From assembly GCA_002269645.1 (NCBI GenBank), contig NIVC01001256.1, positions 124,001-188,000 on the forward strand: 64,000 nucleotides of DNA. Direction: 5' to 3'. A program made the position numbers and the translations under genes. The first letter of the stretch is position 1, and the number at the start of each line of letters is the position of its first letter. This DNA comes from Macrostomum lignano. Lineage: Eukaryota. Under the pieces are notes generated by a model that saw only the letters and a list, made by a program, of their open reading frames with translations, did no database searches and was not told the DNA's origin. Of the stretch, positions 7,117-48,810 are shown one piece after another.

Positions 7117-23977
<16,861 letters not shown>

Positions 23978-26825: not shown

Positions 26826-28584
26826 ATGCGGCCATCTGGCGAACTCGACGGCATTGCAGCCGCCTTCTGGCCTCGGCGTCACGGGCGCCTTCGCTGGCGG
26901 CTGGTGCAGACTGGCGCGGCCGCCCTGCTGCTGTCCGCCCTGCTGCTCTACCTGACCTCGTCGTCTACCACCCGACATATGTCGGCCCTGTCAGCCTCGC
27001 CGACTGTCGGGCAGTCGTCTCAACGACGTCTCCTGCTGGAGGCAGCAGTGATTAACGAATCGGTTAACAGCAACTTGTCCGAGCGGCAGCTGCAGCTGAG
27101 CAGAAAATACTGGGCAAAGGTAGAGTAGGTAGAGTAGAATAGAGTGGAGAAGAGTAGAGTAGAGTAGAGTAGAGTAGAGTAGAGTAGAGTAGAGTAGAGT
27201 AGAGTAGAGTAGAGTAGAGTAGAGTAGAGAGGAGTAGAGTAGAGTAGAGTAGAGTAGAGTAGAGTAGAGTAGAGCAGAATAGAGTAGAGTAGAGTAGAGT
27301 AGAGCAGAGGAGAGTAGAATAGAGTAGAGTAGGGCAGAGTAAGATAGAGTAGAGTAGAGCAGAGGAGAGAGAGTAGAGTAGAGTAGAGTAGAGTAGAGTA
27401 GAGTAGAGTAGAGTAGAGTAGAGTAGAGCAGAGTAGAGTATAATAGAGTAGAGTAGGGCAGAGCAGAGTAGAGTAGAGTAGAGTAGAGTAGAGTAGAGTA
27501 GAGTAGAGTAGAGTAGAGTAGAGTAGAGTAGAGTAGAGTAGAGTGGAGAAGAGGAAGGTAGAGTAGAGTAGAGCAGAGGAGAGAGAATAGCGCGAGAGGA
27601 AAGACAGGATTACTGCCATGCTGAATTCAATTTCTGTTTGTTTTCCAGGTGCAGCTGCACTTTTCCAACGGCGGCGCCGACTCCCCACACTACCGGATGC
27701 TTGAGTCCCGATGCAGCGTCCCCGACAACGAGACCGAGCCGATCCAGGCGCTCCAGTTGCCCCCGACCGGCTTCTCTGACCACCCCTACCTGATCAACTC
27801 CGGCCCCTGCACCGGCCGCGTCTCCATCGTCCTCGCCGTTCACTCGGCCATCGGGCACTCGGACCGGCGCCGTGTCATCCGCGAGACCTGGGGCAGCGTC
27901 CGCTACGTCCGCGGCCGCCGGCTGCTGCTCGTTTTCTTTCTCGGCCGGCCGGCCGGCGACGCCGAGCAGCGGCAGCAGGCCGCAGTGGCGGAGGAGGCGG
28001 CCCGCCACCAGGACATTGTGCAGCGCGACTTTGTTGACAGCTACAGGAACATGACCATCAAGCACCTGGGCATCTACGACTGGCTGTTCGAGTTCTGCAA
28101 GTCCGCCGACTGGCTCGTCAAGGTCGACGACGATGTGTTTGTCGACGTCTTCCACCTGGAGGCGTTTCTCAGCACCTACCGGCCGGGCGCTGGGCTCTGC
28201 TGCAAGGTGCAGAGCGGCAGGCCGGAGCGAGTCCCCAGCGACAAGTGGTTCGTCACCAGGCGGGAGTTCCCCGGCGACAAGTACCCAAAGTACTGCGAAG
28301 GCTACGCCTACATCATCAAGCCGACGCTCGCCCGGCTGCTCTACTGGTGCTCCGTGTTCTCCAGACGTCTGTGGATCGATGACGTCTACGTGCTGGGCAT
28401 CCTAGTGCAGCGGCTGGGCCTCCGGCACCAGCCAGCCCTGCAGGGTCACCTGTGGGCCGACCTGCTGCCCAGCCACATGGGAAAGGCCATTGTTGATTAC
28501 GTCTTCCTGGTGGACAGGCACAACGGACTCCAGGCCAGCACCTGGCGGAGACTGCACAGGGCTGCTGTGAAGTACTCCTACTGA
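26826..28584 (+). CDS. GT31-family beta-1,3-galactosyltransferase-like type II membrane protein, about 409 aa
   Basis: Exon 1 26826-27119 carries the signal anchor AAALLLSALLLYL; exon 2 27649-28584; phase-0 join. Motifs: RR.VIRETWG, DIVQRDFVDSYRNMTIK, VKVDDDVFV, KWFV..EFPGDKYPKYCEGYAY, IDDVYVLG. Confidence 0.93.
27120..27590. repeat. (TAGAG)n filling the GT31 intron, starting at the donor GT
   Basis: aag|gtagag.. Confidence 0.97.
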
Positions 28585-29426
28585 CCTGCCTGCGCGCACA
28601 CAAGCTGCTGTGCGAGTGTTAATACGCGCATTAACAAACGTATTTATTTTTGTTAATATCGATAAGAATATTGTTTACATGTTGCAAAATAAATTTGAGA
28701 AAATAATTTTAGATTTCTTTTTATAGATCGATCGGTTTTATTAATCCGAAATTAAATTATCAATCACAATTTTCTGTCACTTTAGAGTCATGATTGCCTC
28801 CACCAAAAATGATGCCGACCAACTGATGCCACAGCAGCTCTGAAAGGAAGATTGTATAAATTATCGAGTGAATTCAGTGCACACAACCGGCGAGGGCCAT
28901 TGCTGCCCATTCCGCCGACTCCCCTGAGCAGGCGCACAAGCGCGCGGATACGTACGCAGGCACACACTCACACAGGAGTGTACAGCGGCCCTAACTTTAT
29001 TTATCGTTAGGCATGTACACTTCACTGCGGCTTGCGGGTTGGCCCTCAAGGGCGTTTAAAATTGCACGAGCAGAGCCAAGCCGAGATTCCAATTTAGCCC
29101 CAAATTAATGTGACTGCACTTGGAATCGAGCCTGGGCCGCTGGAACATCAGACCGCCGCGCTGGGCGTTAAAGATGGTTAATTATAATTATTATGGTTAA
29201 TGAAGAACGGTATTGAACGAGAAGAGAAATAAGGGGATTGTAGATAAGATTAGATAAGCTAACGAAGATAAGGTAAGGACCAGACCAGGGCATGGGGTTT
29301 CGGGTGGAGAGGCCAGCCCCCCATTTTAATAAGAGCAGGCTCTTTTTCAGCTGAGAATCTGGGACGCCCTGGGTGAAGCATGCACTGGTCAGTTGTTTCA
29401 AGTGAATGCTGACGCACCGCATTGAG

Positions 29427-29754
29427 CTACTGGAGAATGATAGCCTCTACCGTAGTGGCGTCCATTTGCAGAAGGTCGTCAAGGCTTTTTGGCGCCTCTG
29501 TGGTCTCCTGTTCGTGAGCTCGCATTTTCTGAACGAACGGCTTCAGCTTCTGGATGCACTGAGACACCCCCTTGGGGTCCGGCATCGGGCGGTCGGTGGG
29601 CGGAGAGCCCTGGGACGGCGAGGTCTCTAAAAGTTCAAGTAAAAAATGCAAGTAAACAATGATTTGCAGTATCCTAATTAACATAATGAGCTCACTCACC
29701 GAGCACCAGGATCAGGGCGAACAGCAGAACAGTTGACAGGCAGAGAGTTCGCAT
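29427..29754 (-). CDS. Small secreted protein, family member C (84 aa, ends AIILQ)
   Basis: Exon 1 29754-29700 (MRTLCLSTVLLFALILVL, |gtgagt, phase 1); 73-nt intron; exon 2 29626-29427 after ttttag|; ATTAAA about 100 nt after the stop. Confidence 0.72.
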
Positions 29755-30349
29755 TGTGGAAGCGTTGGCAGTGCGTGACTATGCGGCAAAACTAATTGAG
29801 TCGAGTCAGTTGAGTCTTATCTGCAATGCTCCGAGCACCTCATATTTATTTATTTCTGCATCCGCGCCCACTCAAAGTCAAGTGCAGACTTCTTTAGCAG
29901 GCAATTAATTTTCCGGTTTCGATTGCTCTCAGTTTTCAGACAGCTGTTTCTACTGCGATCTTAGGATTTAAACGCCCACCAAACTTTGAGTTTCCGTGCT
30001 CAGGTGTGCCACAAAAAACCGAGAAACAAATCAAAGGAGAAAATGAATGCCCCGAGCAACAGATTACAGCGAAAGTGCTGATTACATGAGGATTTGGTGA
30101 CAGATGAGGCTTCAACTGAGTCCTCAGTCCCAGCTCGGATTTCGGTGTGAAAGCCACAGCTGGCGGGCCAGAAATTATAATTAAAAATATACTGTGCTAC
30201 TCTATATGCCCTCGGAGTTAAGCAGTTCACGAACTCAAAGAGACTTAACTTCAGAGAACACAAGTTTCCTTTTAACTTTATTGGGAATTGGAGCAGTTCA
30301 GTCACTGTAAAAAATTCTTAATTCCTTTGCACCCTATGGACTTCAGAAT

Positions 30350-31120
30350 TACAAATGGAAAAAGTTTTATTGGAAAGCGACGCCATAGACATTCAAGCCA
30401 GGCCACAGGCTCGGGCTGCTTGGGAATACACAACCATACGAGAGAATGTGGATTCGGTCGTAGAATGTGGAATGGACAATAAAAATGGGAAAATGCCATT
30501 CAAAACGGGAATTCGCCCAATTTAATGTATTTTTTATATCTCAGGGTCACTGGAATATTTAAAAGTGAACTAAGTGTCCGTTATCGGAAGCAAAACAAAA
30601 GTAACTCAGAACTCCTTGAGAGTCAGGAAAGGATTTTCATCGAGTTTCTCAACCAAGAATTCCCCCATTTCCTGATCGGCCTTGCACAATCCTTCTTTCC
30701 GACCACCGCGAGGAAGGGATTCTGCACTCTGCCATCGAGTCGAAAGTTGGCAGCGATTCGGAATGCGGTTGTTTTCTTGATTTGCAAGATTCTTGCAGCT
30801 CCTGCGATGCATGACCCTTGTTCAATCGCATCAGTCAGCCGCTGGCGATCTGCTAAAGGAATTGGTGGCGCCATTGAATGGGGTCATTTTCAGGCCAAAG
30901 ACGAGCAAACAGGGGAGGGAGGGACAGAGAGCTAAAAAATCTCAGTCCTATTCCCGTTTTGAATGGCTTTTTCCCATATTGAATGTCCAAAGTTATAGTC
31001 TATGGCCAAGCCTCCCTCAGTAGACTGCTAAACTGCTTAAGTCCATGACTAAGGGTGTGATCTGTGGCCTGGCTTGAATTTCTATGGCGTCTCGTTTTGA
31101 TTGTCCAAATTCCCATTTAG
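30350..31120 (-). mobile_element. Internally deleted Tc1/IS630-like DNA transposon with long imperfect TIRs
   Basis: Frameshifted HTH-type N-terminus on the minus strand (RQRLTDAIEQG..ARILQIKKTTAFRIA / LPRGGRK..DQEMGEFLVEKLDENPFLTLKE). Inverted matches: gacgccatagacattcaagccaggccacag vs ctgtggcctggcttgaatttctatggcgtc, and atgggaaaatgccattcaaaacgggaat vs attcccgttttgaatggctttttcccat. Exact ends not resolved. Confidence 0.7.
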
Positions 31121-31773
31121 ATCGACAAAACCGATTATTTATTTTCCATTTATACATGTCTAGGGCAATAAATGCAATAAATGAAAATCTAAGCGGGGTC
31201 TAAATTTATCCAAAAAACGGTTTTGCTGTCGATGGTCCAACTCTTCCTTGAATTATGGAAGCCAGAAATCCTGCTGGCGGATTGAAATTGTTTCGTTGAG
31301 ATGCTCTGTTGTCTATGGCCAACGTTTGAAGCCAACTGTACCCTTTAAACACAGAGAGATAAGTTAAGAGGAGTTAACAGAGATCAGGAAGATTCGGAAA
31401 TCTCTCTCGATCTGTTATAAAGTCGATATTTTCTGCCAAAGTAATCCAATGGTCGAAAGATTTCAAAATATAAACGAGAACGAATTTAACACAATCTTTC
31501 ATGGAGACATGCGAGTGGTTGGTAGCTCGTAGCCACGTTTAAGGAGTGGTACTACGAGGCGAAAAAAACAAACTCAGAGTTCAGGCGATGGACCTGCAAT
31601 GATGCATGGTTCTGAAAGAGATGGACGAGTTCACCAAGTCTGAATCTTAACTGGCTGATGAAAATGTTCATTCTGGAGGTGAGGGCTAAGCGTAGAGAGA
31701 GTTATTCAACTGGGACGTTGAAAGATTTCTATTCGTCGATTCAGTACTGAATTCATTGGTGCTGAATTATTCT

Positions 31774-32810
31774 GGGGGATTTGTAGCCTAGTGTTAAGTG
31801 GTAAGTCGCTGACTGCGCCGGCAGCTCAACCCCCTGGCCAGTTGCAACTCTGTCAGGCTGAAGTGGATCCCAGGGCACGCAGGGTTTCCGGGGAACGAGT
31901 TGGCAGACACCCTCGCCAAGAGGGGTGGCTCTGGCTCCTTCCTAGGCCCTGCTCCCCTGGTCCCTATCCCTTCTACGGTCATCAATCGTCAGATCGATGA
32001 CTGGGCTGATTCCCTTCACAGGGACAGATGGGCGGGCGCCCAGAACTGCTGGCAATCACGTCCTGCGGTTCCGTGCCCCTCTCGCAGGCTCAGGAACATC
32101 TTTCGGAACCAAAACCGGAAGGTTTAAAAACCTTTACCGGCCATGGCTACCTCGCTAGACACTGCTTCCTCCCTTCCTCCGAGGAGACCTCGAGAGTGAA
32201 CTTTGCCCTTTTTGCGAGTACGGTAATGAAGATGCTCAGCACTTTGTCTGTCACTGCCCTTTCTTTACCATGCAGAGACCGGCTACGCTACCTCGGACCG
32301 AACCCGTCCATTGACGAGGTCTGCCAGCCCGACAGCATCCCACGGCTCATCCAGTTCCTTCGGGCGACAAGACGAGCGACTTTCTTCCCCACGGAAGATC
32401 ACGCTGCAGGACGGACCGGCGGACCACCCTGACCGGCCCCACGCCTCTGCCTGTCTGCGGGGCTTTAGGGGCTGGCGGAATGGGCGACCCTGCAGCTAGT
32501 CAAGTCAAGTAATTCAAGTGGTAAGATCGCCAGACTCACAACTGAAGGTCGAGGGTTCGATTCTCGACACATTCAGAACAATCTGTGTGCATGAGCAAGA
32601 CACTTAACTCTGCATTCTTTCACTTCACCCAGCTGTAAAATGGGTGCCAGCATTAGCTGGGGTAATAGAGGGTGTGTGGCGACCCCCAGTCCTTGGAATA
32701 AAAAGCTGTAGGCAGCCTTCAGATGCATTGCGCAATAGCCCCGGCTGAGCACATGTGGGTTGCACATGTGGCCCAATTGGGGCAGGTGTAATCAATCATT
32801 ATTATTATTT
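31774..32810 (+). mobile_element. tRNA-derived SINE (Nin/Deu-like core), split by a LINE insertion
   Basis: Head ggggatttgtagcctagtg..gtggtaag, B-box ggttcgattc near 32554, core tgagcaagacacttaactc..cacccagctgtaaaatgggt, (att)n tail near 32800. The core family assignment is from memory only. Confidence 0.6.
31806..32515 (+). mobile_element. 5'-truncated non-LTR retrotransposon (RNase H plus CCHC C-terminus)
   Basis: LASCNSVRLKWIPGHAGFPGNELADTLAKRG (RNase HI), TGHGYLARH, CPFCEYGNEDAQHFVCHCP, (tcaag)n tail; flanked by duplicated aagtggtaag at 31796-31805 and 32516-32525. Confidence 0.85.
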
Positions 32811-32999
32811 ATCAGTACCAAATGCGGAACGTTAACGGCCGGCTGTAAAGCATCTGGATGGATCCGGACATGGTAGATACTGACTTTGGTGCAAGTGCAA
32901 ATAAATGAAATAAACAACTGGATCATAGGGGAGTGTTCGGGGTTCGGGATCGGGTTAGGAATAAAAATGACAAATAGTACCAGAGATGCATGCCCTATT

Positions 33000-34130
33000 G
33001 GGCTCTACGTCCAATCTGCAGCCCCCGCCGCAGCTCCTCGTCGCGGAGGGGAGCTTCCCCTGGGAGGAGTCGAAGAGCGCCGTAACCCGGACATCATGTC
33101 GTGAGTACGAATCGGTTTTACACCGGGGGAGCTAGTTCTGCGGCCCACTACCTCCCTGCTCTGCTGCTTAGAAGGGCCGGTGATATCGAGACGAACCCGG
33201 GGCCCGCGAGCAACTGCGGGCAGGTCGAATGCGGTCGGCCCCTGCGTGGCAGATTCCTGCACTGCAGCAGCTGCGGCCTCGACTACCACCTGAGCCGCTG
33301 GGCTGCGAACAGAGCGGTTGATGCTCCCAACTGGAGCTGCCGTGTTTGCGCCAACCGTCCTACAGCCACCCCTGTTGTTCAATCAGCACCAGAGCTGGTG
33401 GAGTCCGACTCGCCTCATCAATCCGAGAGTTGTGCTGCGCGGCGAGAAGCTCTGCTGTGCCGCCTTCAGCAAGACAAACCTAACTGCGCCAACTGCCGTA
33501 AACCCGTGCAGGTTAGCCCCGTCATAGCTTGCTGTTACATCTGTGAGTGCTTCTTCCACAATGCCTGCCCTCGCGCCACTCGGGAGCAGATTAAGAAAGA
33601 GGTCAGCTGCGGCGGTGCCTAAACTGCACCACGGCTGCCTGCCGCCCTGATGGGGGAGCTTAAGGATCTGGTCGTCCGTCTCAATGCGGACATTGCCACT
33701 GTTCAAGAATCCAACCTCACCTCTTTTAATAAGATGCCGAAAGTTCCTGGCTTCGTCACGGCGCGCAAAGACCGGAAGATATTCAGAATGGACCCAAACA
33801 TTAAGGTGGGGGATGGTCTCTTGTTCCTGGTCGCCGGAAGCTGCAGGGCTCGACCGGTGGCACGACTGAAGGCTGCCGAATCTCCATCAGCACGTCCGCC
33901 AGCAAAAAGATCGTCATCTCCAACATCTACCGCCCTCCGATCCGGCAGTCCGAAGGCACCGACCACCGTGAGCACCCGAGCGTTGACAGCTGGCTTCGGT
34001 GCTTTCAACCCGCTGTGGGGCAGCGAACCCCATCGCCTCATTGACTGGTGTACCACCACCAGCTACCGGATCCTGAATAATGAGCAGCACACGTGCGTAG
34101 ACCGGCGCTCGGGCCGCACCTCCATAACAT
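33000..34130 (+). mobile_element. Decayed 5' part of an APE-type non-LTR element (2A, PHD-like fingers, AP endonuclease)
   Basis: LLRRAGDIETNPGP; Cys/His clusters C..C..HCSSC..H..CRVC and CANC..CYICECFFHNAC; APE motifs DIATVQESNL and FGAFNPLWGS; frameshifts and stops present. Confidence 0.8.
33161..33205 (+). other. 2A (StopGo) ribosomal-skip motif LLLRRAGDIETNPG|P
   Basis: Exact match to D-[V/I]-E-x-N-P-G-P (D codon at 33182). Confidence 0.8.
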
Positions 34131-34629
34131 TTGTCAAATTCCAAGTTAAAAATTATAATAAATTATTATGCTTGTCAATTTAGCTTAGATCTACAAATAT
34201 GTGCATCTATAGCACAGGTATTATAATCCTAGATACTTGAATCTTTAGTTGATTCCACGGAAATCGCATCGCTCACTGCTAGAGCCTACTATCGGTGTAG
34301 TAGTCTGTACAGATATAACTATTATTAAGATGCACCAATAAATGCTGTAATCTCATCAGTCTGATTCAATGTTTTTGATAGTAGCTCGTAAATCATACTT
34401 GGATCATCAGATGTTGAATTAAAATGCGTTTGCACTGCTGAACTGACGAGTAGTTTATCGTCAACAAGCATTTGCGCACTTGTAGGGATTTTTCATCAAA
34501 AATGAGCGAAAAGCAATTGGAGAAGAAATTTAGCTTGAAATGTCTATTAACCACACTTAAATATGAGCGTTCATTTATTCAGAATATCTCAGCCAGTCGG
34601 GCGAGCTTTGATGTCTTCTCATCTCTGAT

Positions 34630-34898
34630 AAAAGAATCCAGCTCGAAGGTCTATCTGGAGGAATATGGCTCCTTCAATGTCCGGCTCAGTTACTTTGGCG
34701 GAGGCGGTGAGCTCCGACTCGCTGGTGGTGCTGAGCAGTTCCGCTATCAGACCCAGAAGCTGCTGCACCCTGTGGTGGCTCAGATTTGGCTGCTCCGATG
34801 CTGTTCGTACCGGATGGCGGCGCGGCTGCCGTCACGCCTGGAATTGAACCGGATGGAGTTCAGGGACTGCCTGGCACTGAATACCGGTCTCTTCTGCA
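34630..34898 (-). pseudogene. Orphan duplicate of exon 2 of secreted-family member B
   Basis: Near-identical to about 35840-36113 (offset 1215 nt); carries the 3' UTR homologous to member A, with AATAAA at 34574-34579; no exon 1 of its own. Confidence 0.6.
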
Positions 34899-34924
34899 CT
34901 GATTGCATGTAATTGAAGTTTTCT

Positions 34925-35830
34925 TCTCTTTATCCAGTTCCTATCCAGTCCCTATTCGGTCTCTATCCAGTCTCTATCCAGTCTCTATCCATTCTCTATC
35001 CAGTCCATCCAGTCTCTATCCAGTCCCTATCCAGTCTCTATCTAGTCTCTATCCAGTCTCTATCCAGTCTCTATCCAGTCTCTATCCAGTCTCTATCTAG
35101 TCTCTATCTAGTCTCTATCCAGTCTCTTTCTAGTCTCTATCCAGTCTCTATCCAGTCTCTATCCAGTCTCTATCTAGTCTCTATCCAGTCTCTATCCAGT
35201 CTCTATCTAGTCTCTATCCAGTCTCTATCCAGTCTCTGTCTAGTATCTATCCAGTCTCTATCCAGTCTCTATTGCGGTCTCTATCCAGTCTCTATCCAGT
35301 CCCTATCCAGTCTCCATCCAGTATCTATTGCAGTCTCTATCCATTCTCTATCCAGTCTCTATCCAGTCTCTATCCAGTCTCTATCCAGTCTCTATCTAGT
35401 CTCTATCCAGTCTCTATCCAGTCTCTATCCAGTCTCTATCCAGTCTCTATCTAGTCTCTATTGCAGTCTCTATCCATTCTCTATCCAGTCCATCCAGTCT
35501 CTATCCAGTCCCTATCCAGTCTCTATCCAGTCCCTATCCAGTCTCTATCTAGTCTCTATCCAGTCTCTATCCAGTCTCTATCCAGTCTCTATCCAGTCTC
35601 TATCTAGTCTCTATCTAGTCTCTATCCAGTCTCTATCTAGTCTCTATCCAGTCTCTATCCAGTCTCTATCCAGTCTCTATCTAGTCTCTATCCAGTCTCT
35701 ATCCAGTCTCTATCCAGTCTCTATCCAGTCTCTATCCAGTCTCTATCTAGTATCTATCCAGTCTCTATCCAGTCTCTATCCAGTCTCTATCCAGTCTCTA
35801 TCTAGTCTCTATTGCAGTCTCTATCCATTC
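34925..35830. repeat. About 11-bp ctatccagtct repeat; related arrays at 36135-36298 and 39045-39400
   Basis: Direct reading; lies in introns of secreted-family members. Confidence 0.93.
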
Positions 35831-35835
35831 TCTCT

Positions 35836-36364
35836 ATCTCTGATGGAAGAATCCAGCTCGAAGGTCTATCTGGAGGAATATGGCTCCTTCAATGTCCGGC
35901 TCAGTTACTTTGGCGGAGGCGGTGAGCTCCGGCTTGCTGGTGGTGCTGAGCAGTTCCGCTATCAGACCCATAAGCTGCTGCACCCTGTGGTGGCTCAGAT
36001 TTGGCTGCTCCGATGCTGTTCGGACCGGATGGCGGCGCGGCTGCCGTCACGCCTGGAATTGAACCGGATGGAGTTCAGGGACTGCCTGGCACTGAATACC
36101 GGTCTCTTCTGCACTGATTGCATGTAATTGAAGTTTTCTTCTCTTTATCCAGTTCCTATCCAGTCCCTATTCGGTCTCTATCCAGTCTCTATCCAGTCTC
36201 TATCCATTCTCTATCCAGTCCATCCAGTCTCTATCCAGTCCCTATCCAGTCTCTATCTAGTTCCTATCCTGTCCCTATAAGGTCTCTATCCAGTCTCGCA
36301 AGTGAAACTCACCGATCAACATTGTCACAAAAAGGCAGACGAGAATGGCGGAGACGAGTCGCAT
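35836..36364 (-). pseudogene. Secreted-family member B (signal exon intact, exon 2 interrupted or truncated)
   Basis: Exon 1 36364-36313 (MRLVSAILVCLFVTMLI, |gtgagt) is homologous to member A exon 1. Acceptors at 36114/36109. The frame homologous to A (VPEL..EQPNL..QQLL..AIFLQ) has a TGA after QFQA. Confidence 0.6.
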
Positions 36365-36457
36365 TGTTACGGTCAAAGTCTGCTTGGTAGAGAACAAGTA
36401 AGTCCTGGCTGCGTCAGTTCACCGATTGAGTCCCCAGTTCTGAGCAGTGTGCCAGAA

Positions 36458-36463
36458 TTTATA
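36458..36463 (-). promoter_or_regulatory. TATA box of member B
   Basis: TATAAA about 95 nt upstream of ATG 36364. Confidence 0.55.
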
Positions 36464-36699
36464 CCAAAAATAAGTGCCATAGACACCTGATAGCCCTTCA
36501 AATTTGAATTCTGTTCAAAAAAGTTGCATTCGAATACGATTTAGAAAATGGCAGAATTCAGAGCTCAAGCGTTCCAAGCCTCAGGCAGCTGAATAGTTTC
36601 TTGAAAAGTGAGTAAGTCTCTCAACAAGCTGCTCCCAGTGAGTGACGTGGCAGCTACTGATAAAGTTTTCACAGGCTGTTTGCAGCTGACAACAAGTGC

Positions 36700-37400
36700 C
36701 TATCCGTAGTCGAAAGAATGTGCGAGACTTTTGCAGGCATCCAGTCTTAAAAGAAGCATGTGTGACATTGCTATGCCCCGAAGGCTCAAGTCAAAGGTTT
36801 TGGGGGAAGCAGGCGAGGAATTCAAGATGTTTCCAGAGCTGGTTGACGGTGCAAAAAGGGGTGACGAGGGCATCGTGGGAGAAGCGAGTGGAACCATCCC
36901 GGAGGGAGGGCCGCGGAGTTGGTGATTTTTAACAGACGGATCAGGCAAAATGGAGTCAAGTGTGTCACGTGGAGTTGTAGAGAGGAACTCTTTGGGTGGC
37001 AACAGCAGGTTAACTGCACGTGCAGCTCCATGGTGGTAGGTGGGTGGGTGAGCGACTGGTGCATCACGACCCAGTGGATAATGCCCGGTCACACGGACAT
37101 CCATGGCAACAAAAGAGCGGACGAGTTGGCAAAGATGGCAACTCAGCTGGACCAGAGCACGACCGCGGAGACACTTTAGAGACCGCTCGAAGCCTAACAA
37201 TCCGGTCGGTGTACAGTAGTAAGATTGAGTACCCCGACGCTGGCAGAAGGATTACAACGCTGTTGGAGCAGCTGCGTAGGCACAAAATACTGGCGGCAGA
37301 ATGTCGGGTTAGAGCCGAGAGCAGTGTGTGACAACTGCGGCTGATGGGACGGCCTTAGAAAGCGCCTGCCCGATGCAGTCGCTGGCTGATTTGAACAAAG
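36700..37400 (+). mobile_element. Decayed non-LTR RNase H region
   Basis: Broken IF(T)DGS motif near 36920 and QWIMPGHTDIHGNKRADELAKMA; multiple frameshifts. Confidence 0.6.
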
Positions 37401-37841
37401 GTGAGATTGTGCAGTCGCAAAAAGTCCTCAGGGCGGGCCATCCGCAGTGAAGAGAGTGTACCGAGGACACAAGCAACAAAATACCGTGTCAGATATTGAA
37501 GAGTTTAAGAGTGGTGATCAGTCACTCAAAAACTCCCACTTCTAGACACTGGGGAACAAGTGCCTAGGTATTTACCAGTTCAAACAACTTACTGCAGCGA
37601 ATCCTCTTGGGGTCGGCAGCCGGTGGAGTTCTGTGGCGCGTCGGGATAGCAAGCTTGCTGAGCGGTTACGGCGACCGGTTCCGGTGAACAACTGTTTTTC
37701 TTTGGTGTCCTTAACTTTATCTGTGGGTCGACCAAACGAGAGCGAATCAGAACTTCTTAACGGTCCTCGAGCTCGAAATTCACAATAGAACGTGCACGTG
37801 CGCCCTTATGAACAATTGAATTCTCTGACTGTCTGTACTAG

Positions 37842-37888
37842 GTCCTCCTGAAGGGCGTCTTCTTCGTACGTCCGAAACGTAACGGATA
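37842..37888 (+). other. Degenerate minimal hammerhead-like motif (Penelope pLTR style)
   Basis: ctgaag-ggcgt..acgtcc-gaaacgta followed by aataaa. The CUGANGA core is imperfect and stem I is mismatched. Confidence 0.33.
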
Positions 37889-38759
37889 ACTCAATTAACT
37901 CAATAAATCCTCTAGGAATATCCTAGGAAACAAGGAGGCCTTTCTCAAATGTATCAACAATGAACTGCTCTCGTATAACTCAATTAACCAACTTATTAAC
38001 GCTAGTAACAAATAACTAAATCGGGTAAACGCTTACCAATTGGACAGGTGTGGTCCCTCAGAGATTGGTCTTCTTGTTTCTTCAGAGTCTTCTTAGAGAT
38101 TGCTCCGAGTCTGAATTTTTGACTCGAATTTTGACTTATATTTATAGCAAAATTTTGGAGAAAAACCGGTTTGGGATTGGGTATTTACTTAGGTCAAAAA
38201 TGTTTGATTAAGCGGTCATGCATGTTTGAGCATTACCATATATGGAGTTAAACAAATACAGCTGTTGAAATCCGGTTCCTTGATCAAACAATGTAGGTTT
38301 CTAAATCATTCTGTTTGCGCGTGATTCCTAAAATAGATATGACTCATTTTGAAAGAAATTGACTTCCTTAGAATATTACTTTAAGTAGAGTAGTACATGG
38401 TCTAATAACTCTCTGCAATATGATACAACCACAGAGTCTCAGGCGCCTCTCTGGGCTTGGGCTGCACCGCTGACCAAACCCGGAGCGCCGGAATCAGTGA
38501 CTTTCATAGCTTTGATTCAGATCTTAATTTAAAATGAGTTTGTACTACTCAACTGACTAGTAGTTTATCGTTAAACTATATCGAAACCAGCAGTCGTGCA
38601 CTTTCGGGATAATAAAAAATTAACGAAAAGCAATAGGGGATTTGCTTGAAACGTCTATTAACCAGATTTGTTAATAAGAATTTATTTGTTTGGAATATCT
38701 CAGCCAGTCAGCGAGCACTGATGTCTTCTCGTCTCTGATGAAGAATCCAGCTCGAAGCT

Positions 38760-39575
38760 CTATTGGAGGATCATTCTTTTCTCGTACTTGGCGACCGGCC
38801 TGATTTCGGGGGTGGTGGTTGGCTCCGGCATCCTGTTGGTGTCCCGGTCCAGCAGTTTCTGCAGAACAGCCAGCAGCTTCTGCAGATTGGGCTTCTCTTT
38901 TTGGTTCTTGTGATCCCGGTTTTTTAAAATGAACGGCGTGACGGTCGAAACGTCTGGAATCAGATCGATTGAGAGTTCAGGGAGTTCGTTGAAGCTGAGC
39001 ATTCCACGGGATCGGGTCTCTCTCTCCTCTACTGAATTGGAGCCTATCCTGCCTATATCCAGTTTCTATCCTGCCTATATCCAGTTTCTATCTAGCCTAT
39101 ATCCATTTTCTATCCTGCCTATATCCAGTTTCTATCCTGCCTATATCCAGTTCTATCTAGCCTATATCCATTTTCTATCCTGCCTATATCCAGTTTCTAT
39201 CCTGCCTATATCCAGTTTCTATCTAGCCTATATCCAGTTTCTATCTAGCCTATATCCAGTTTCTATCTAGCCTATATCCAGTTTCTATCTAGCCTATATC
39301 CAGTCTCTATCTAAGCCTATATAGTCTCTAATCTTGTTTATATCAAGTCTATCTAGTCTATATCTAGTCCCTATTTAGTCTGTATCTAGTCTCCTTCTAG
39401 TTTTCATCCCTTCTCTTACGAGCGTATACCATTTGTCGCTCAATTCTGCCCCCTCCTGAAGGACAGGAGGCACTCTGTTCTTTCTCCGAATGCTTTGTTA
39501 GCCAGCCCCGAGCTGAAACTTACCGATCAGCAGAGCCACAAAAAGGCACACAAGAATTGAGGAGGCGATTCGCAT
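38760..39575 (-). CDS. Small secreted protein, family member A (107 aa, ends RMILQ)
   Basis: Exon 1 39575-39524 (MRIASSILVCLFVALLI, |gtaagt, phase 1); exon 2 39031-38760 after aattcag|; AATAAA at 38681-38686. Confidence 0.76.
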
Positions 39576-39653: not shown

Positions 39654-39661
39654 TTTATATA
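39654..39661 (-). promoter_or_regulatory. TATA box of member A
   Basis: TATATAAA about 80 nt upstream of ATG 39575. Confidence 0.6.
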
Positions 39662-40586: not shown

Positions 40587-41336
40587 ATGAGGTGCGAATT
40601 AGCCGTCGCAATTCTGATCCTGAGCAGCCAGTTGGAGCCAGCCAAGGCCGTCTGTCCCGCGCCGTTCGCTACCGAGGCGGGCAGGTGTGTATTGATAAAC
40701 CGACTGCAGGCCTACAGCTGGTGCGAGGCCAACCTGCAGTGCGAAGCCCTCGGAGGCGAGCTCATCAACTCGTACAGCTCGCTGAAGCTGCTGGCCGACA
40801 TGCCGAGCTTTCAATGCGCCGACACGAGCAAGAGCAGCGGTGTGTGGCTCGGGGTGACCGACCTGGCCGAGGAGAGGGGGACCAACAGGTCCGGCTGGCA
40901 GCTGGGGAACAGGAACGGCGTACTGCCCCTGAACGACTCCCTGTGGTTCCCCGACACGCCCAGCAGCAAAAGCAGCGACCAGGACTGCCTGTCCACCTCC
41001 GACTTCTCAACTGAACTCATCGATCTGAAGTGCTCAACTCTGCGCGGATTTGCCTGCGAGTTCGTGGGAGCCGCGGCTCGGAATTTGACGGTGAGAGCCA
41101 CGTGGCGGCGGGTGCAGTTCAGGCGCTTGGACTTCAGCTCTGAGTATTGCTATGCGGATGTGCGGCGAGTGCTCAGCCCGATTCACTGCTTGGCGGCCGC
41201 CACCAAGGCTGGCAAAAGCAAGGACCTGCTGTACAACAGCAAGCTGAGGACCTGCCGTCTGCTGCTGTTCTCTGACGCCCAGGTTCAGGAGCAGATCGAG
41301 ACCAGCGCCGACTGGGTGAAGTTCAGCGCCTACTGA
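40587..41336 (+). CDS. Intronless secreted C-type lectin-domain protein with a degenerate PAN/apple-like C-terminal domain (249 aa)
   Basis: Signal MRCELAVAILILS..AKA; CTLD pattern CP..F....GRC, SWCEAN..C..LGG.L, VWLGVTD, WFPDTP...DCL, LIDLKC...FACE; tail C..A..LLYN..LRTCRLL. Confidence 0.88.
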   Translation: MRCELAVAILILSSQLEPAKAVCPAPFATEAGRCVLINRLQAYSWCEANLQCEALGGELINSYSSLKLLADMPSFQCADTSKSSGVWLGVTDLAEERGTNRSGWQLGNRNGVLPLNDSLWFPDTPSSKSSDQDCLSTSDFSTELIDLKCSTLRGFACEFVGAAARNLTVRATWRRVQFRRLDFSSEYCYADVRRVLSPIHCLAAATKAGKSKDLLYNSKLRTCRLLLFSDAQVQEQIETSADWVKFSAY

Positions 41337-43986: not shown

Positions 43987-44741
43987 GCTGATTGAAGTAT
44001 TCCGGCTGTCTGTAGATGAGGCTTGGAGGAGTCTGCAATTGCTGGCTTGGTCCGCTAAGCAGTGCGGACTAAGCAGTGCTAAGCGGCGCATTTATGCACT
44101 CAAAACTGACACGTTTTTCCGGTTCGAAGGATCGACGCGCACTGCTGAGCTGCGGGCCGCACGTGAGCAAAGAACGAAGCGCTCTGACCCGCTCAGGACA
44201 AATATTTCAAACTACTGTATAGAATTCCGGCACACAGTCCCCGTTGTTTGTTAAAGGCTGCCTGACAAGATGCCACAGTGTCCTTTGTGCGAACTGTCAA
44301 TATTGACAACAGTTTCAGGGTGCCCTTTGCTATTTATCATTTCTTACAGTGCATTTGCTTGCTTTGCTTAGATTAAGCAATCCAAAGCAGCAGACACAAA
44401 AAGATGAGAAGTAATTTACGAGCGTACATAGTCTGTAATCTCAAATGTTTCACATTCCATTTGATGATGATGATGATCCTCATCATCCTCAGATGATGAT
44501 CATCATCATCCTCAGCTTCTTGAGCACTGCAGCGTAGCTCGCTGAACGCAAACTTCGACAAAGACTTGATGGAGCAGATCTCAGACTGTCACGTCAGCTG
44601 CTTGACGCCCCTCAAATGTTTTCTACTCACAGAATATTTGGAATCTTAAACCTCTCAAACCCTTTCATCAAGTCATGGCTTCGAGAAGACCTGCTTCCAG
44701 ACAGGCCCTGCTTGCTGAAAGGCGCAGACTTAGTCTTGACT

Positions 44742-46021
44742 CGGACATCCGATACAAGCTCTGATTCGGACACGGATACAAGCTCTGATTCGGACACGGA
44801 TACAAGCTCTGATTCGGACACGGATACAAGCTCTGATTCGGACACGGATACAAGCTCTGATTCGGACACGGACACAAGCTCTGATTCGGACACGGACACA
44901 AGCTCTGATTCGGACACGGACACAAGCTCTGATTCGGACACGGACACAAGCTCTGATTCGGACACGGACACAAGCTCTGATTCGGACACGGATACAAGCT
45001 CTGATTCGGACACGGATACAAGCTCTGATTCGGACACGGACACAAGCTCTGATTCGGACACGGATACAAGCTCTGATTCGGACACGGATGCACAAGCTCT
45101 GATTCGGACACGGATACAAGCTCTGATTCGGACACGGACACAAGCTCTGATTCCGACACGGATACAAGCTCTGATTCGGACACGGACACAAGCTCTGATT
45201 CGGACATGGATACAAGCTCTGATTCGGACACGGACACAAGCTCTGATTCCGACACGGATACAAGCTCTGATTCGGACACGGACACAAGCTCTGATTCGGA
45301 CACGGACACAAGCTCTGATTCGGACATGGATACAAGCTCTGATTCGGACACGGACACAAGCTCTGATTCCGACACGGATACAAGCTCTGATTCGGACACG
45401 GACACAAGCTCTGATTCCGACACGGATACAAGCTCTGATTCGGACACGGACACAAGCTCTGATTCGGACACGGATACAAGCTCTGATTCGGACACGGATA
45501 CAAGCTCTGATTCGGACACGGATACAAGCTCTGATTCGGACACGGATACAAGCTCTGATTCGGACACGGATACAAGCTGATTCGGACACGGATACAAGCT
45601 CTGATTCGGACACGGACACAAGCTCTGATTCGGACACGGATACAAGCTCTGATTCGGACACGGATACACAAGCTCTGATTCGGACACGGACACAAGCTCT
45701 GATTCGGACACGGATACAAGCTCTGATTCGGACACGGACACAAGCTCTGATTCGGACCCGGATACAAGCTCTGATTCGGACACGGACACAAGCTCTGATT
45801 CGGACACGGATACAAGCTCTGATTCGGACACGGACACAAGCTCTGATTCGGACCCGGATACAAGCTCTGATTCGGACACGGATACCAGCTCTGATTCGGA
45901 CACGGATACAAGCTCTGATTCGGACACGGATACAAGCTCTGATTCGGACACGGATACCAGCTCTGATTCGGACACGGATACAAGCTCTGATTCGGACACG
46001 GATACAAGCTCTGATTCGGAC
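44742..46021. repeat. 24-bp minisatellite gacacggatacaagctctgattcg
   Basis: Period 24 with three 2-nt indels. Confidence 0.97.
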
Positions 46022-46287
46022 TGTTGAGAAGATTGCTTCATTAGTAAAGAACGAAACTCATAGAGCTCAGCTCAACAACATCCTGAGAACGCAGTTCGAA
46101 AAATGCAACACCAGGTAAAATGCGGCTTGCACAGGTAATAATTAATGCAAAATACTGCGCATGCAGTCTTGTATTTTTAATAATTTTACGGTTAGCTCGT
46201 CAAAATTTGTGAATGCACAAAGTATTTTTTGGCCAGTAAATTTCAAATGATTCTACGAAATGCGTGTTCGCCACTGAAGGCTCCCGA

Positions 46288-48810
46288 TCAGGTAGCCACT
46301 GCCGCCACCAGTCGCGTCTGCAGCAGGGCGGCCACGTGCATCGACAGCGGAACGTCCGGCGGGCTTCCACCGAGCAGCAGGTAGACGCGGCGCCGACGAC
46401 GGTCGAAAGCGGCCACGCAGGCGAGGGCGTAATCGGACACGGATTTGGCCGGCGGCGCCTGCCGAGACCAGCCGTCCGAGGCTGCGTCATCGAGGGAGGC
46501 GGTCTGCAAATTCCGGGTAGGGTTGGCGAATACCGACACTGAAATCCCGAATACCGACACTGAAATCCCGAATATCGACACTGAAATCTCGAATTCCGAC
46601 ACTGAAATCCCGAATACCGACACTGAAATCCCGAATACCGACACTGAAATCCCGAATACCGACACTGAAATCCCGAATACCGACACTGAAATCCCGAATA
46701 CCGACACTGAAATCCCGAATACCGACACTGAAATCCCGAATACCGACACTGAAATCCTGAATACCGACACTGAAATTCCGAATTCCGACACTGAAATCCC
46801 GAATACCGACACTGAAATCCCGACTACCGACACTGAAATCTCGACTACCGACACTGAAATCCCGAATACCGACACTGAAATCCCGACTACCGACACTGAA
46901 ATCCCGACTACCGACACCGAAATCAAGAATACCGACACTAAAATCAAGAATACCGACACTGAAATCCCGAATATCGACACTGAAATCAAGAATACCGACA
47001 CTGAAATCCCGAATATCGACACTGAAATCTCGAATTCCGACACTGAAATCCCGAATACCGACACTGAAATCCCGAATACCGACACTGAAATCCCGAATAC
47101 CGACACTGAAATCCCGAATACCGACACTGAAATCCCGAATACCAACACTGAAATCCTGAATACCGACACTGAAATTCCGAATTCCGACACTGAAATCCCG
47201 AATACCGACACTGAAATCCCGACTACCGACACTGAAATCTCGACTACCGACACTGAAATCCCGAATACCGACACTGAAATCCCGACTACCGACACTGAAA
47301 TCCCGACTACCGACACTGAAATCCCGACTACCGACACCGAAATCAAGAATACCGACACTAAAATCAAGAATACCGACACCTGGGAGGCACCTTTCCTCAG
47401 ATTAAGGATTACCAGAATGCCATTGGGATCTTTCGCAAGATTTTCGGGGTGGGGAATTCCACTGTTAGGGACACAGCCTATACGATCGGATTTCTCATCC
47501 TCTGAACCGGCAGTCACGTGACAAACTTTAAATAAGATGACGGCGCCGGGCACCAGCTGGTCGGGGATCCGTAGAGGCAGGTAGCGCATTGGATTTTCGA
47601 CAGCGTCGCGAAAGGCTGCCCAATCGATGCTTGGCGGAGGCGGCGGCGGCGGAGGCGGAGGCGGAGGTGGCGCCGGTAGGGGAGGCGCTTGTCTTGCTGG
47701 CTGGCGCCGCTGCTTCCGTGGCGATGGCGCAGCGGCCACTGGCGCGTCGGCTTGCGAGCCGCCCTGGCAGATCCGCGCGTCGGCTTGCGAGCCGCCCTGG
47801 CAGATCCGGGCCAGCTGCCGCTGCTGCTGTTCAAGCAGGGCGCCGAGGCGCTGGAACTGGCGCTCGTTGTCTGCCCGCATCGACTGCAGCAGGCCGAACA
47901 GCTGGGCCAGCTGACTGGCCTCGGCTGGGCTGGCGGGCGCGGCGATGGGAGCCGCGGCCACCGCCTCCCTGGCAGCCGTCGCTCTGCGGAACGAAGAATT
48001 CCCAGCCTCCGTAGGAGCGGCAAGCGTGCGATTTGAACTATAATCAGCGTCCTTAGCAACCTCCTTAGCAACGTTCTTAGCCGCATCTGATTGATTGCAC
48101 AGCCGGCCCGAGTCCCTGGCAACATTGCGCCGATCCGCAGGCTGGCAGAAGGCCAGGCAGTCCGGGTGGCTCAGCAGACTTTTGCCGGCCAGCGCTGCCG
48201 CGTTCGCCTCGTTGCATTCGAGCAGCGCCGAGCAGCTGGACGCTTCGTTGTATTCCAGCTGGCGCCGCTTCTCGGCCGCCTCTCGGCGACGCTTTGGCGA
48301 CGGCCCGGCAACGACGGCAACGCCGGCGGCGTCCACAGTGACGCAGCCGCGACGCTTCAAGCCGCGCCGCTGGTCGCCAAGCCGCTGAAATGCGGCGGCG
48401 TCGCCAAACGGCGCGTCGGCGTCGGCCTCGCGCGCCTCACCATCAGAGTCGAACTCCAGCCGGCGCGGCGGCTGCCAGGCGACACCGACTGGAAGAGCCA
48501 ACTTGCGCGGCGGCCGGCCGAGGCGGGGCAGCGACCCAACCTGCGGCGACGCTGCTGTTGTTGACGACTCGGGCACCAACGACGATGCGTTTGCCGCCGC
48601 TGCTGCCGTAGCCTTCCGCTTGACCCGGCGTCTTCGACGTCGACTACGCCGACGCGGCGACTCGTCGACGGCGGCGCTGCTCGTCGCGGCCGGCGTCGGC
48701 GCGGAAGTGACGGTGGCGGAGGACGGCGCGCCGACTTGGCGCCGCTCTATCGGAGCAGCTGTCGGCGGCTCGCTCTCGGAGTCGTCGCTGTCGGTGGCGA
48801 CTTTCTGCGT
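46288..48810 (-). CDS. Low-complexity nuclear protein with a coilin-type Tudor-like C-terminus (about 500 aa); start codon not found in the genome
   Basis: Exon 48810-47527 after ttttttccag|, exon 46503-46288. Joined C-terminus YLPLRIPDQLVPGAVILFK|TASL..SVSDYALACVAAFD...VYLLL..LLQTRLV recalls coilin LP.....VG.KIAFK..VSDY..RL. Basic NLS RRRSRRRRRRVKRK. The coilin N-terminal domain is not seen. Confidence 0.62.
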   Translation of the reverse strand, partial: TQKVATDSDDSESEPPTAAPIERRQVGAPSSATVTSAPTPAATSSAAVDESPRRRSRRRRRRVKRKATAAAAANASSLVPESSTTAASPQVGSLPRLGRPPRKLALPVGVAWQPPRRLEFDSDGEAREADADAPFGDAAAFQRLGDQRRGLKRRGCVTVDAAGVAVVAGPSPKRRREAAEKRRQLEYNEASSCSALLECNEANAAALAGKSLLSHPDCLAFCQPADRRNVARDSGRLCNQSDAAKNVAKEVAKDADYSSNRTLAAPTEAGNSSFRRATAAREAVAAAPIAAPASPAEASQLAQLFGLLQSMRADNERQFQRLGALLEQQQRQLARICQGGSQADARICQGGSQADAPVAAAPSPRKQRRQPARQAPPLPAPPPPPPPPPPPPPSIDWAAFRDAVENPMRYLPLRIPDQLVPGAVILFKVCHVTAGSEDEKSDRIGCVPNSGIPHPENLAKDPNGILVILNLRKGASQVSVFLILVSVFLISVSVVGISVSVVGISVSVVGISVSVFGISVSVVEISVSVVGISVSVFGISVSEFGISVSVFRISVLVFGISVSVFGISVSVFGISVSVFGISVSVFGISVSEFEISVSIFGISVSVFLISVSIFGISVSVFLILVSVFLISVSVVGISVSVVGISVSVFGISVSVVEISVSVVGISVSVFGISVSEFGISVSVFRISVSVFGISVSVFGISVSVFGISVSVFGISVSVFGISVSVFGISVSVFGISVSEFEISVSIFGISVSVFGISVSVFANPTRNLQTASLDDAASDGWSRQAPPAKSVSDYALACVAAFDRRRRRVYLLLGGSPPDVPLSMHVAALLQTRLVAAVAT
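46531..47379. repeat. 21-bp minisatellite accgacactgaaatcccgaat with a higher-order duplication
   Basis: The order of variant units recurs at about 420 bp spacing. Confidence 0.95.

Follow-up and report, generated by a model that had tools for sequence, protein, structure and literature searches.

The window analysed here is a 64,000-nucleotide stretch of Macrostomum lignano scaffold NIVC01001256.1 (assembly GCA_002269645.1, Mlig_3_7), and its minus strand carries a tandem cluster of three small genes, which we call A, B and C. We propose, with moderate confidence, that they are orphan M. lignano genes for very small secreted, gonad-associated peptides related to reproduction. A first-pass annotation made from the letters of the DNA had described the three loci as small two-exon signal-peptide genes without a recognisable domain, and this description is borne out by the gene models and by the lack of any Pfam match. 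The same annotation called the genes unrecognised. In fact GenBank lists A and C as hypothetical proteins and UniProt carries B and C under the name "Secreted protein", so that only the family relationship was undescribed; the database entries give no family, paralogy, frame shift or exon duplication. New here are the paralogy of A and B, the re-framing and exon duplication of B, the link of transcript RNA815_42823 to the locus, and a contrast in evolutionary rate among the three genes.

The A-B-C order recurs on two further scaffolds, NIVC01001548.1 (L001) and NIVC01001670.1 (L002), at approximately 87–97% identity. This arrangement on three scaffolds fits the known partial genome duplication of M. 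lignano (PMC5730564). In the window scaffold, the GenBank layout (a gene A span of 816 bp, with an 84-aa gene 9,821 bp downstream) is identical to that of the window. The Mlig_3_7 annotation was built solely on RNA-seq transcript assemblies (StringTie/TACO, de novo transcripts, TBONE and TransDecoder), with non-coding and repeat-overlapping transcripts discarded before submission (PMC5730564). As the deposited, RNA-seq-derived products equal our spliced models of A and C residue for residue, the splice junctions of both genes are supported by transcripts, and the spliced transcripts on which the first-pass models depended do exist for these two genes.

The two-exon model first drawn for A (38760–39575) matches GenBank PAA70240.1 exactly. 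A TATA box, TATATAAA (39654–39661), lies 86 nt upstream of the ATG and is conserved in L001 and L002. Exon 1 (39524–39575) contributes 52 coding nucleotides for the signal peptide, MRIASSILVCLFVALLI plus 1 nt, and ends in phase 1; a 570-nt intron (38954–39523, GTAAGT...CAG) contains a 22-nt satellite at 39044–39400, and exon 2 (38760–38953, including the stop codon) ends RMILQ-stop. The polyadenylation signal AATAAA (38681–38686) aligns with that of B. Splicing 39575–39524 to 38953–38760 gives the 81 residues of PAA70240.1 (BOX15_Mlig023216g1), which, like the other two copies, PAA66587.1 and PAA65259.1, is annotated as a hypothetical protein. The intron measures 523 and 887 nt in the homeologous copies. 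Mature A would be a peptide of ~64 aa and ~7.5 kDa with a charge of +5 (+4.9), a pI of 9.9 and a Thr/Pro-rich tail, including an amphipathic helix whose 14-mer LQKLLAVLQKLLDR has a hydrophobic moment of 0.65. A single-sequence AlphaFold model predicts this helix at residues 40–56 with low confidence (pLDDT 59).

The L002 copy PAA65259.1 is longer, at 115 aa, as it starts 26 codons upstream of the signal-peptide ATG (L002 10001–10078, homeologous to window ~39653–39576). Only 3 nt separate this ATG from the TATA box, and in the window its equivalent leads to a stop codon; the extra N-terminal residues are probably an artefact of choosing the longest ORF.

In gene C, a TATA-like A/T box, AAATAAATAAATAT (29842–29855), lies ~90–100 nt upstream of the ATG and is followed by exon 1 (29700–29754; 55 nt, MRTLCLSTVLLFALILVL plus 1 nt, phase 1), a 73-nt intron (29627–29699, GTGAGT...TTTTAG) and exon 2 (29427–29626 including the stop, ending AIILQ-stop), all on the minus strand, with a candidate polyadenylation signal ATTAAA at 29325–29330. 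The proposed two-exon model, 29427–29754, holds in full: the spliced product (29754–29700 joined to 29626–29427) is 84 aa long and identical to PAA70239.1, PAA66588.1 and PAA65258.1 (BOX15_Mlig032925g1/g3). Mature C would be an acidic peptide of ~66 aa (charge −3, calculated −3.1; pI 4.9) with a central helix, placed at residues 36–57 by a low-confidence single-sequence AlphaFold model (pLDDT 62). Its amphipathic segment has a hydrophobic moment of 0.57. Amphipathic segments had been predicted for all three genes; the prediction stands for A and C and fails for B, whose 67-aa product lacks one.

The older ML2 annotation is the source of two C variants in UniProt, A0A1I8IBH3 (93 aa) and A0A1I8HVM3 (97 aa), which diverge after ...MDATT. 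The point of divergence is a GT (ACG/GTAGAG, window 29449–29450, minus strand) inside exon 2, which points to a splice, predicted or alternative, by which another end would take the place of VEAIILQ.

The three genes share a start context, a signal-peptide exon, an intron phase and tandem placement on one strand. The common acaATGCGA-type start that had been noted is well above chance: the window contains four copies of ACAATGCGA where 0.33 would be expected, and at three of these sites A (39575), B (36364) and C (29754) begin on the minus strand. The fourth (56977, plus strand) has no signal-peptide ORF and is a chance match. Exon 1 contributes 52, 52 and 55 coding nucleotides in A, B and C, ending TCG/GT in phase 1 in every case, just as the earlier description of a 52–55-nt signal-peptide exon had it. 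The TATA-like boxes are likewise present, at 86 (A), 99 (B) and ~90–100 nt (C) upstream of the ATG. Each protein begins with an n-region MR followed by a hydrophobic core with a mean Kyte-Doolittle value of 2.7–3.0 over residues 3–17, as in a putative signal peptide. A and C both terminate in ILQ-stop, and in B an ILQ-type end exists out of frame and lacks its stop.

The three genes are lineage-restricted orphans as judged by sequence searches. No Pfam family matched A, B or C, and no PDB sequence matched the products below an E value of 0.5. Word-indexed searches of 5.8 billion proteins, with A and C among the queries, returned only M. lignano entries, two proteins for A and one for C, and a phmmer search of C against 1.84 billion representatives found only C itself; the libraries covered by these searches probably do not include other Macrostomum transcriptomes. 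An origin in a known family or a transposable element, which the first-pass annotation had named as one outcome that would overturn it, was not found: there were no Pfam matches and no dispersed copies. A transposable element or repeat-derived ORF was accordingly rejected, as no further copies of A, B or C occur elsewhere in the 64-kb window, the copies on L001 and L002 are syntenic homeologs, and repetitive sequence at the genes is confined to the intron and the 3′ satellite. We also rejected a neuropeptide or prohormone precursor, since the single KR of A (EKR/MILQ) is not conserved in L002 (QAKIILQ), C has none, and no G-K/R motif is present. A micro-exon gene (MEG) is excluded by the presence of only two exons, of 52–55 nt and ~195–200 nt coding length.

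That the three form one family, as originally claimed, is firmly established for A and B. Their DNA aligns across the promoter, exon 1, the satellite-filled intron, exon 2 and the 3′ untranslated region (UTR), and protein shuffle tests of A against B give p < 0.003. Identity is 81% in exon 1, 78% in the 5′ flank, 85.5% in the 3′UTR and 72% in the coding part of exon 2, which also carries five indels. From these alignments A and B are, on solid grounds, paralogues that arose by tandem duplication. The mature region thus diverges faster than the signal exon and the UTRs (72% and five indels versus 81% and 85.5%), as had been reported for this pair.

The case for C as a member comes from its gene structure and from the ILQ end that it shares, and on these grounds we consider a common origin with A and B likely. 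The rather doubtful alternative is that C is unrelated and that the shared features reflect coincidence or convergence among neighbouring small secreted-protein genes, phase-1 introns behind signal peptides being common. Sequence comparison leans this way. BLASTP of C against A/B gives E values of 0.016–0.66, with the best match non-colinear (motif PFILKNRDHKNQ / PFVQKMRAHEQE); hhalign returns a probability of 0.7%; global, local and semiglobal shuffle tests give p = 0.05–0.48; and tblastn finds no cross-match between A/B and C. Nor is there significant DNA similarity between A and C over the promoter and exon 1; the promoter part of this comparison has little power, since it did not pick up the established paralogy of A and B either. 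Against coincidence, the 9-nt start ACAATGCGA is identical in all three genes and is not a generic context (the neighbouring lectin ORF starts GCTATGAGG), and exon-1 length, the TCG/GT end, intron phase, size, strand and adjacency all agree. A and C both end I-L-Q-stop, for which we estimate a chance of ~1e-4 in unrelated proteins, and the A/B profile scores C above 98.9% of shuffles (p ~0.011), albeit through the non-colinear motif.

Gene B departs furthest from the first description. Its TATA box, TATAAAT (36457–36463), lies 99 nt upstream of the ATG and is conserved in L001 and L002; exon 1 (36313–36364; 52 nt, MRLVSAILVCLFVTMLI plus 1 nt) is 81% identical to that of A and 100% identical across the three homeologs. 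Intron 1 (36053–36312, 260 nt) holds an 11-nt satellite, CTGGATAGAGA, at 36142–36297. Exon 2 is present twice in the window scaffold. Copy 2a (35834–36052) has a 67-aa frame that stops at 35901 and a 3′UTR truncated after ~30 nt; beyond it lie a 907-bp array of the 11-nt satellite (34927–35833), absent at this position in L001 and L002, and copy 2b (34574–34837), which retains the 67-aa frame (coding sequence 34837–34686), a full 3′UTR and AATAAA at 34579–34574. All of these features lie on the minus strand. Copy 2b is 98% identical to 2a and is preceded by a repeat of the intron end, whereas L001 and L002 have a single B exon 2 each. The original B coordinates, 35836–36364, were therefore incomplete and overlooked the second exon 2 copy, from 34837 onwards. 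The 3′UTR and AATAAA said to be shared with A do exist but lie outside those coordinates, 1.2 kb further on, behind copy 2b.

The B product is also not the one first written, PNLSHHRVQQLLGL...AIFLQ, which is unreachable from exon 1 through the acceptor at 36052. Relative to A, exon 2 of B carries indels of −1, +2, −6, −3 and +1 nt, and from the acceptor homologous to that of A (36052) its frame differs from A's and yields 67 aa ending RLRQSN-stop. The A-like frame of B (PNLSHHRV...AIFLQ) meets a TGA directly after the homologous acceptor, and only splicing to a non-homologous acceptor at 36015 would open it; with no stop behind LQ, the frame continues IDLRAGFFHQR-stop. Both the frame shift and the stop loss are present in L001 and L002 as well, so these lesions predate the divergence of the three homeologous loci. 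UniProt entries A0A1I8I0T9 and A0A1I8IBS6, from the older ML2 assembly, are 67-aa B products made of exon 1 and the homologous acceptor, the product of exon 1 and copy 2b being identical to A0A1I8IBS6. The 67-aa product is rich in Ala, Gly, Pro and Gln and contains no amphipathic segment. The segment QQLLGL read in B was in any case a misreading of QQLMGL in exon 2a, and the A-like frame has a charge of −2 (−1.9). B is missing from the GenBank core gene set of Mlig_3_7.

Satellite DNA accompanies these rearrangements. Arrays occur at 39044–39400 (A) and at 36142–36297 and 34927–35833 (B), the intron arrays of A and B being equally placed, and array length differs in every copy, giving introns of 523–887 nt in A and 260–579 nt in B. 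By eye, the 22-nt unit of the A intron resembles two diverged 11-mers, and the unit in B is the 11-nt CTGGATAGAGA; this apparent relationship suggests that the repeat is older than the A/B duplication. The 907-bp satellite was likely the substrate of the duplication of B exon 2.

B is transcribed, and its RNA is detected in the gonads, according to the primer mapping of transcript RNA815_42823. Table S11 of Brand et al. 2020 (PMC7336406) lists this 477-nt transcript with the in situ pattern "gonads", credited to Ramm et al. 2019, and marks it as unmappable to the Mlig_37v3 gene set. Apart from its first six bases, the forward primer matches the B 5′UTR exactly at 36386–36408 (minus strand); the reverse primer falls in the B 3′UTR at 34608–34631 (plus strand), with two mismatches in the window and none in L001. 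Transcription of B is thus supported by primers that map to both of its UTRs. The position of the forward primer places the 5′ end of RNA815_42823 at least 52 nt upstream of the ATG, ~45 nt past the TATA box, as a TATA-driven start predicts. A hypothetical three-exon B mRNA, made of exon 1, the first 144 nt of 2a (donor AAA/GTAACT at 35908) and 2b, would span 476 nt between the primers against the 477 reported, and would be in frame, encoding 115 aa with a duplicated 48-aa unit. We set little store by this agreement, since splicing at AG dinucleotides within the intron satellite could yield nearly any length.

The three genes differ in how they have changed between the homeologous scaffolds. 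Between the window and L001, A has two changes, both non-synonymous; between the window and L002, pS is 0.092 and pN 0.123 (ratio 1.34), and between L001 and L002 the ratio is 1.51. Nearly all changes in A fall in the C-terminal half, and in-frame indels of 3 and 21 nt leave both the reading frame and the ILQ end intact. With so few changes (5.5 synonymous and 22.5 non-synonymous), relaxed or diversifying selection on A is indicated and positive selection is unproven. In B, window and L002 show 2 differences over the 152 positions of the proximal promoter and exon 1, compared with 6–18% in the introns and 6% in exon 2. C is almost invariant: all three homeologs show 0–1 difference in ~935 nt spanning the promoter, exons, intron and 3′UTR. 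This divergence-free island covers window ~29250–30000, reaching ~250 nt upstream and 180 nt downstream of the gene, and its flanks differ by 2–4% from L002. Since the island includes the intron and UTRs, it points to either unusually strong constraint or gene conversion. The strong divergence of mature regions claimed for all three genes therefore does not extend to C, whose mature region is identical among the homeologous loci, and the pattern of fast-evolving secreted proteins describes A and B only.

These data also bear on the possibility, which we regard as real though clearly the lesser one, that B is a transcribed pseudogene and that the A/B lineage may be decaying, its "fast evolution" being neutral drift after a recent genome duplication. 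Every copy of B carries the frame shift and lacks the ancestral stop, pN roughly equals or exceeds pS whichever candidate frame is read, the gene is missing from the GenBank core set, its exon 2 is duplicated and its 3′UTR is disrupted by satellite; the pN/pS of A, too, is indistinguishable from 1. Decay does not readily account for a promoter and exon 1 so much better conserved between window and L002 than the introns and exon 2, for transcription that persists and is tissue-specific, or for the fact that both candidate ORFs are open in four of four exon-2 copies. In A, the ORF has been kept through two in-frame indels and the ILQ end retained.

The organisation and probable working of the cluster can be outlined as follows. 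Each gene has a TATA-type promoter and a first exon encoding only the signal peptide, followed by a phase-1 intron, filled in A and B with CTGGATAGAGA-type satellite, and by a second exon encoding a peptide of ~50–65 aa. B arose from A by tandem duplication, with indels (−1, +2, ..., +1) producing a new exon 2 frame of 67 aa and the loss of the LQ stop, and recombination involving the satellite probably then duplicated B exon 2 in the window scaffold. C probably dates from an early step of the same duplication series and has since diverged greatly. The signal peptide would direct the products into the endoplasmic reticulum (ER), and the secreted forms would be short and largely disordered apart from one amphipathic helix, which is cationic in A and acidic in C. 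Outside the cell they may serve in reproduction, acting within the gonads or from them. Selection on the A/B lineage would be relaxed or diversifying, and C would be subject to constraint or gene conversion. A reproductive role fits the rapid evolution of Macrostomum reproduction-related genes, which also lose detectable homologues (PMC7336406).

Several points weigh against this reproductive interpretation. The "gonads" pattern belongs to B only, and it comes second-hand through Table S11 (PMC7336406). B may itself be a decaying copy, in which case its expression says little about function: its copies show no purifying selection in either frame, with pN near or above pS. The pN/pS above 1 in A is indistinguishable from neutrality on 5.5 synonymous and 22.5 non-synonymous changes. 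The homology of A/B with C lacks statistical sequence support, and signal-peptide cleavage is putative, deduced from the hydrophobic core and the UniProt name.

The gene IDs Mlig023216, Mlig032925 and Mlig028569 are absent from the complete Table S11 of in situ-tested prostate, tail and antrum transcripts mapped to Mlig_37v3 (PMC7336406) and from the supplements of Weber et al. 2018 (PMC5977470). Searching the Table S11 primers with short UTR words recovered only the B row, and none for A or C (PMC7336406). The IDs and accessions were not mentioned in the full texts and supplements searched, an absence that is informative only for Table S11. The mucus, toxin or seminal-fluid roles suggested at first thus find no support, the sole expression datum being "gonads" for B.

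Of these roles, that of seminal-fluid peptides produced by prostate gland cells and transferred at mating now appears very unlikely. Small, fast-evolving orphans with signal peptides do resemble many of the 76 prostate-limited M. lignano transcripts, for which signal peptides were found in 38 of 65 (PMC5977470), and among genes of the tail region, which evolve fast, signal peptides are over-represented (PMC7336406). B, however, is listed as "gonads" and not "prostate" (PMC7336406), and the three gene IDs appear neither in the complete Table S11 nor in the supplements of Weber et al. 2018. The prostate-limited set Mlig-pro1-76, which includes suckless-1 and suckless-2 (Weber et al. 2018, PMC5977470), is nevertheless the closest comparison within the species: its members are short, carry a signal peptide, mostly lack homologues, are reproduction-related and evolve fast as a class. 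That set is defined by a prostate-limited in situ signal, whereas the only pattern here is "gonads" (B), and the likeness is one of description.

A host-defence function is likewise unlikely, if slightly less so. The cationic helix of A would then disrupt microbial membranes, and the cluster, lying beside a C-type lectin ORF, would be an innate-immunity locus. Mature A, with a charge of +5, a pI of 9.9, a 14-mer LQKLLAVLQKLLDR of moment 0.65 and a helix predicted at residues 40–56, is compatible with such a role, as are the conserved signal exon, the diverging mature part and the secreted C-type lectin ORF 1 kb away. Yet only A and A′ are cationic (+4.9 and +3.9), C and the A-like frame of B having charges of −3.1 and −1.9; the A helix is embedded in a 64-aa, mostly disordered peptide; neither a propeptide nor a dibasic processing architecture was found, nor any resemblance to an antimicrobial peptide (AMP) family of Pfam; and the only expression datum of the cluster is from the gonads. 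Precursors of the cecropin, magainin and dermaseptin type share two exons, an intron directly after the signal peptide, a conserved signal with a hypervariable mature part and, in the case of A, a cationic amphipathic helix. They differ from the present genes in that here there is no acidic propiece, dibasic site or family match, C and the A-like B frame are acidic, and the mature peptide is longer, with most of it disordered.

Rapidly evolving tandem clusters of reproductive peptides are known from the accessory-gland peptide genes of Drosophila. What the two have in common is tandem duplication, a signal ahead of a short mature peptide, dN/dS close to 1 or higher, frequent decay into pseudogenes and confinement to one lineage, but there is no homology, and expression is in the accessory gland rather than the gonad. 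Flatworm MEGs and orphan secreted proteins are similarly flatworm-restricted, small, secreted, domainless and fast-evolving; MEGs, however, consist of many symmetric micro-exons and are known from parasitic flatworms, whereas A, B and C have two ordinary exons.

If the reproductive interpretation is correct, RNA815_42823, a socially sensitive gonad transcript unplaced in the gene set, is tied to a small tandem family, and the combination of a fast A, a frozen C and a frame-shifted B provides a test case for the birth, diversification and decay of orphan reproductive peptides in a recently polyploid hermaphrodite. A bolder proposal, to which we give little credence, is that A, B and C form a Macrostomum-specific gonad peptide family under sexual selection in which B was re-coded by frame shift and extended by an in-frame, satellite-mediated exon duplication. 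B would then be a new protein sequence caught in the act of forming through frame shift and repeat-driven exon duplication. Otherwise, this is an ordinary lineage-specific cluster of secreted-peptide genes already in public databases. In either case the analysis exposes gaps in the Mlig_3_7 annotation, from which B and the neighbouring C-type lectin ORF are missing and in which one A copy probably has an artefactual N-terminal extension.

The lectin ORF (window 40587–41336, plus strand) is intact and encodes 249 aa in a single exon, with a signal-like N-terminus and a Pfam Lectin_C score of 28.1 bits (cutoff 22.6). It lies ~1 kb from the gene A promoter in divergent orientation and is uncalled in the GenBank annotation of the stretch; the L001 copy is intact (94% amino acid identity) and the L002 copy has a premature stop. 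On the other side of the cluster, a beta-1,3-galactosyltransferase ORF (27649–28584, plus strand; Pfam Galactosyl_T, E 1.3e-41) is convergent with C, ~840 bp from the C stop, and probably lacks its first exon. Further on, two near-duplicate exon-like segments at 18300–19135 (plus strand) resemble, by eye, transmembrane stretches of Cys-loop receptors, and L002 carries an annotated 632-aa gene with Neur_chan_LBD (19321–21235) that lies past the C gene, close to one end of that locus. The upstream neighbour (46288–48804, minus strand) is a 497-aa GenBank product with no Pfam match, whose coding region is interrupted by or overlaps a long tandem repeat. As its L002 homeolog is listed with Cupin_8 (425 aa), these neighbours may not be equivalent.

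A scan of the locus for bacterial promoters and terminators gave hits at chance level and is irrelevant here. Tandem repeats are extremely abundant across the window. Kilobase micro- and minisatellite arrays lie at 12653–13670, 16546–18387, 44616–46118, 46445–47521, 57239–58495 and 59327–60735; being open in several frames, they are the source of most of the long "ORFs" in the window and a trap for ORF-based gene calling.

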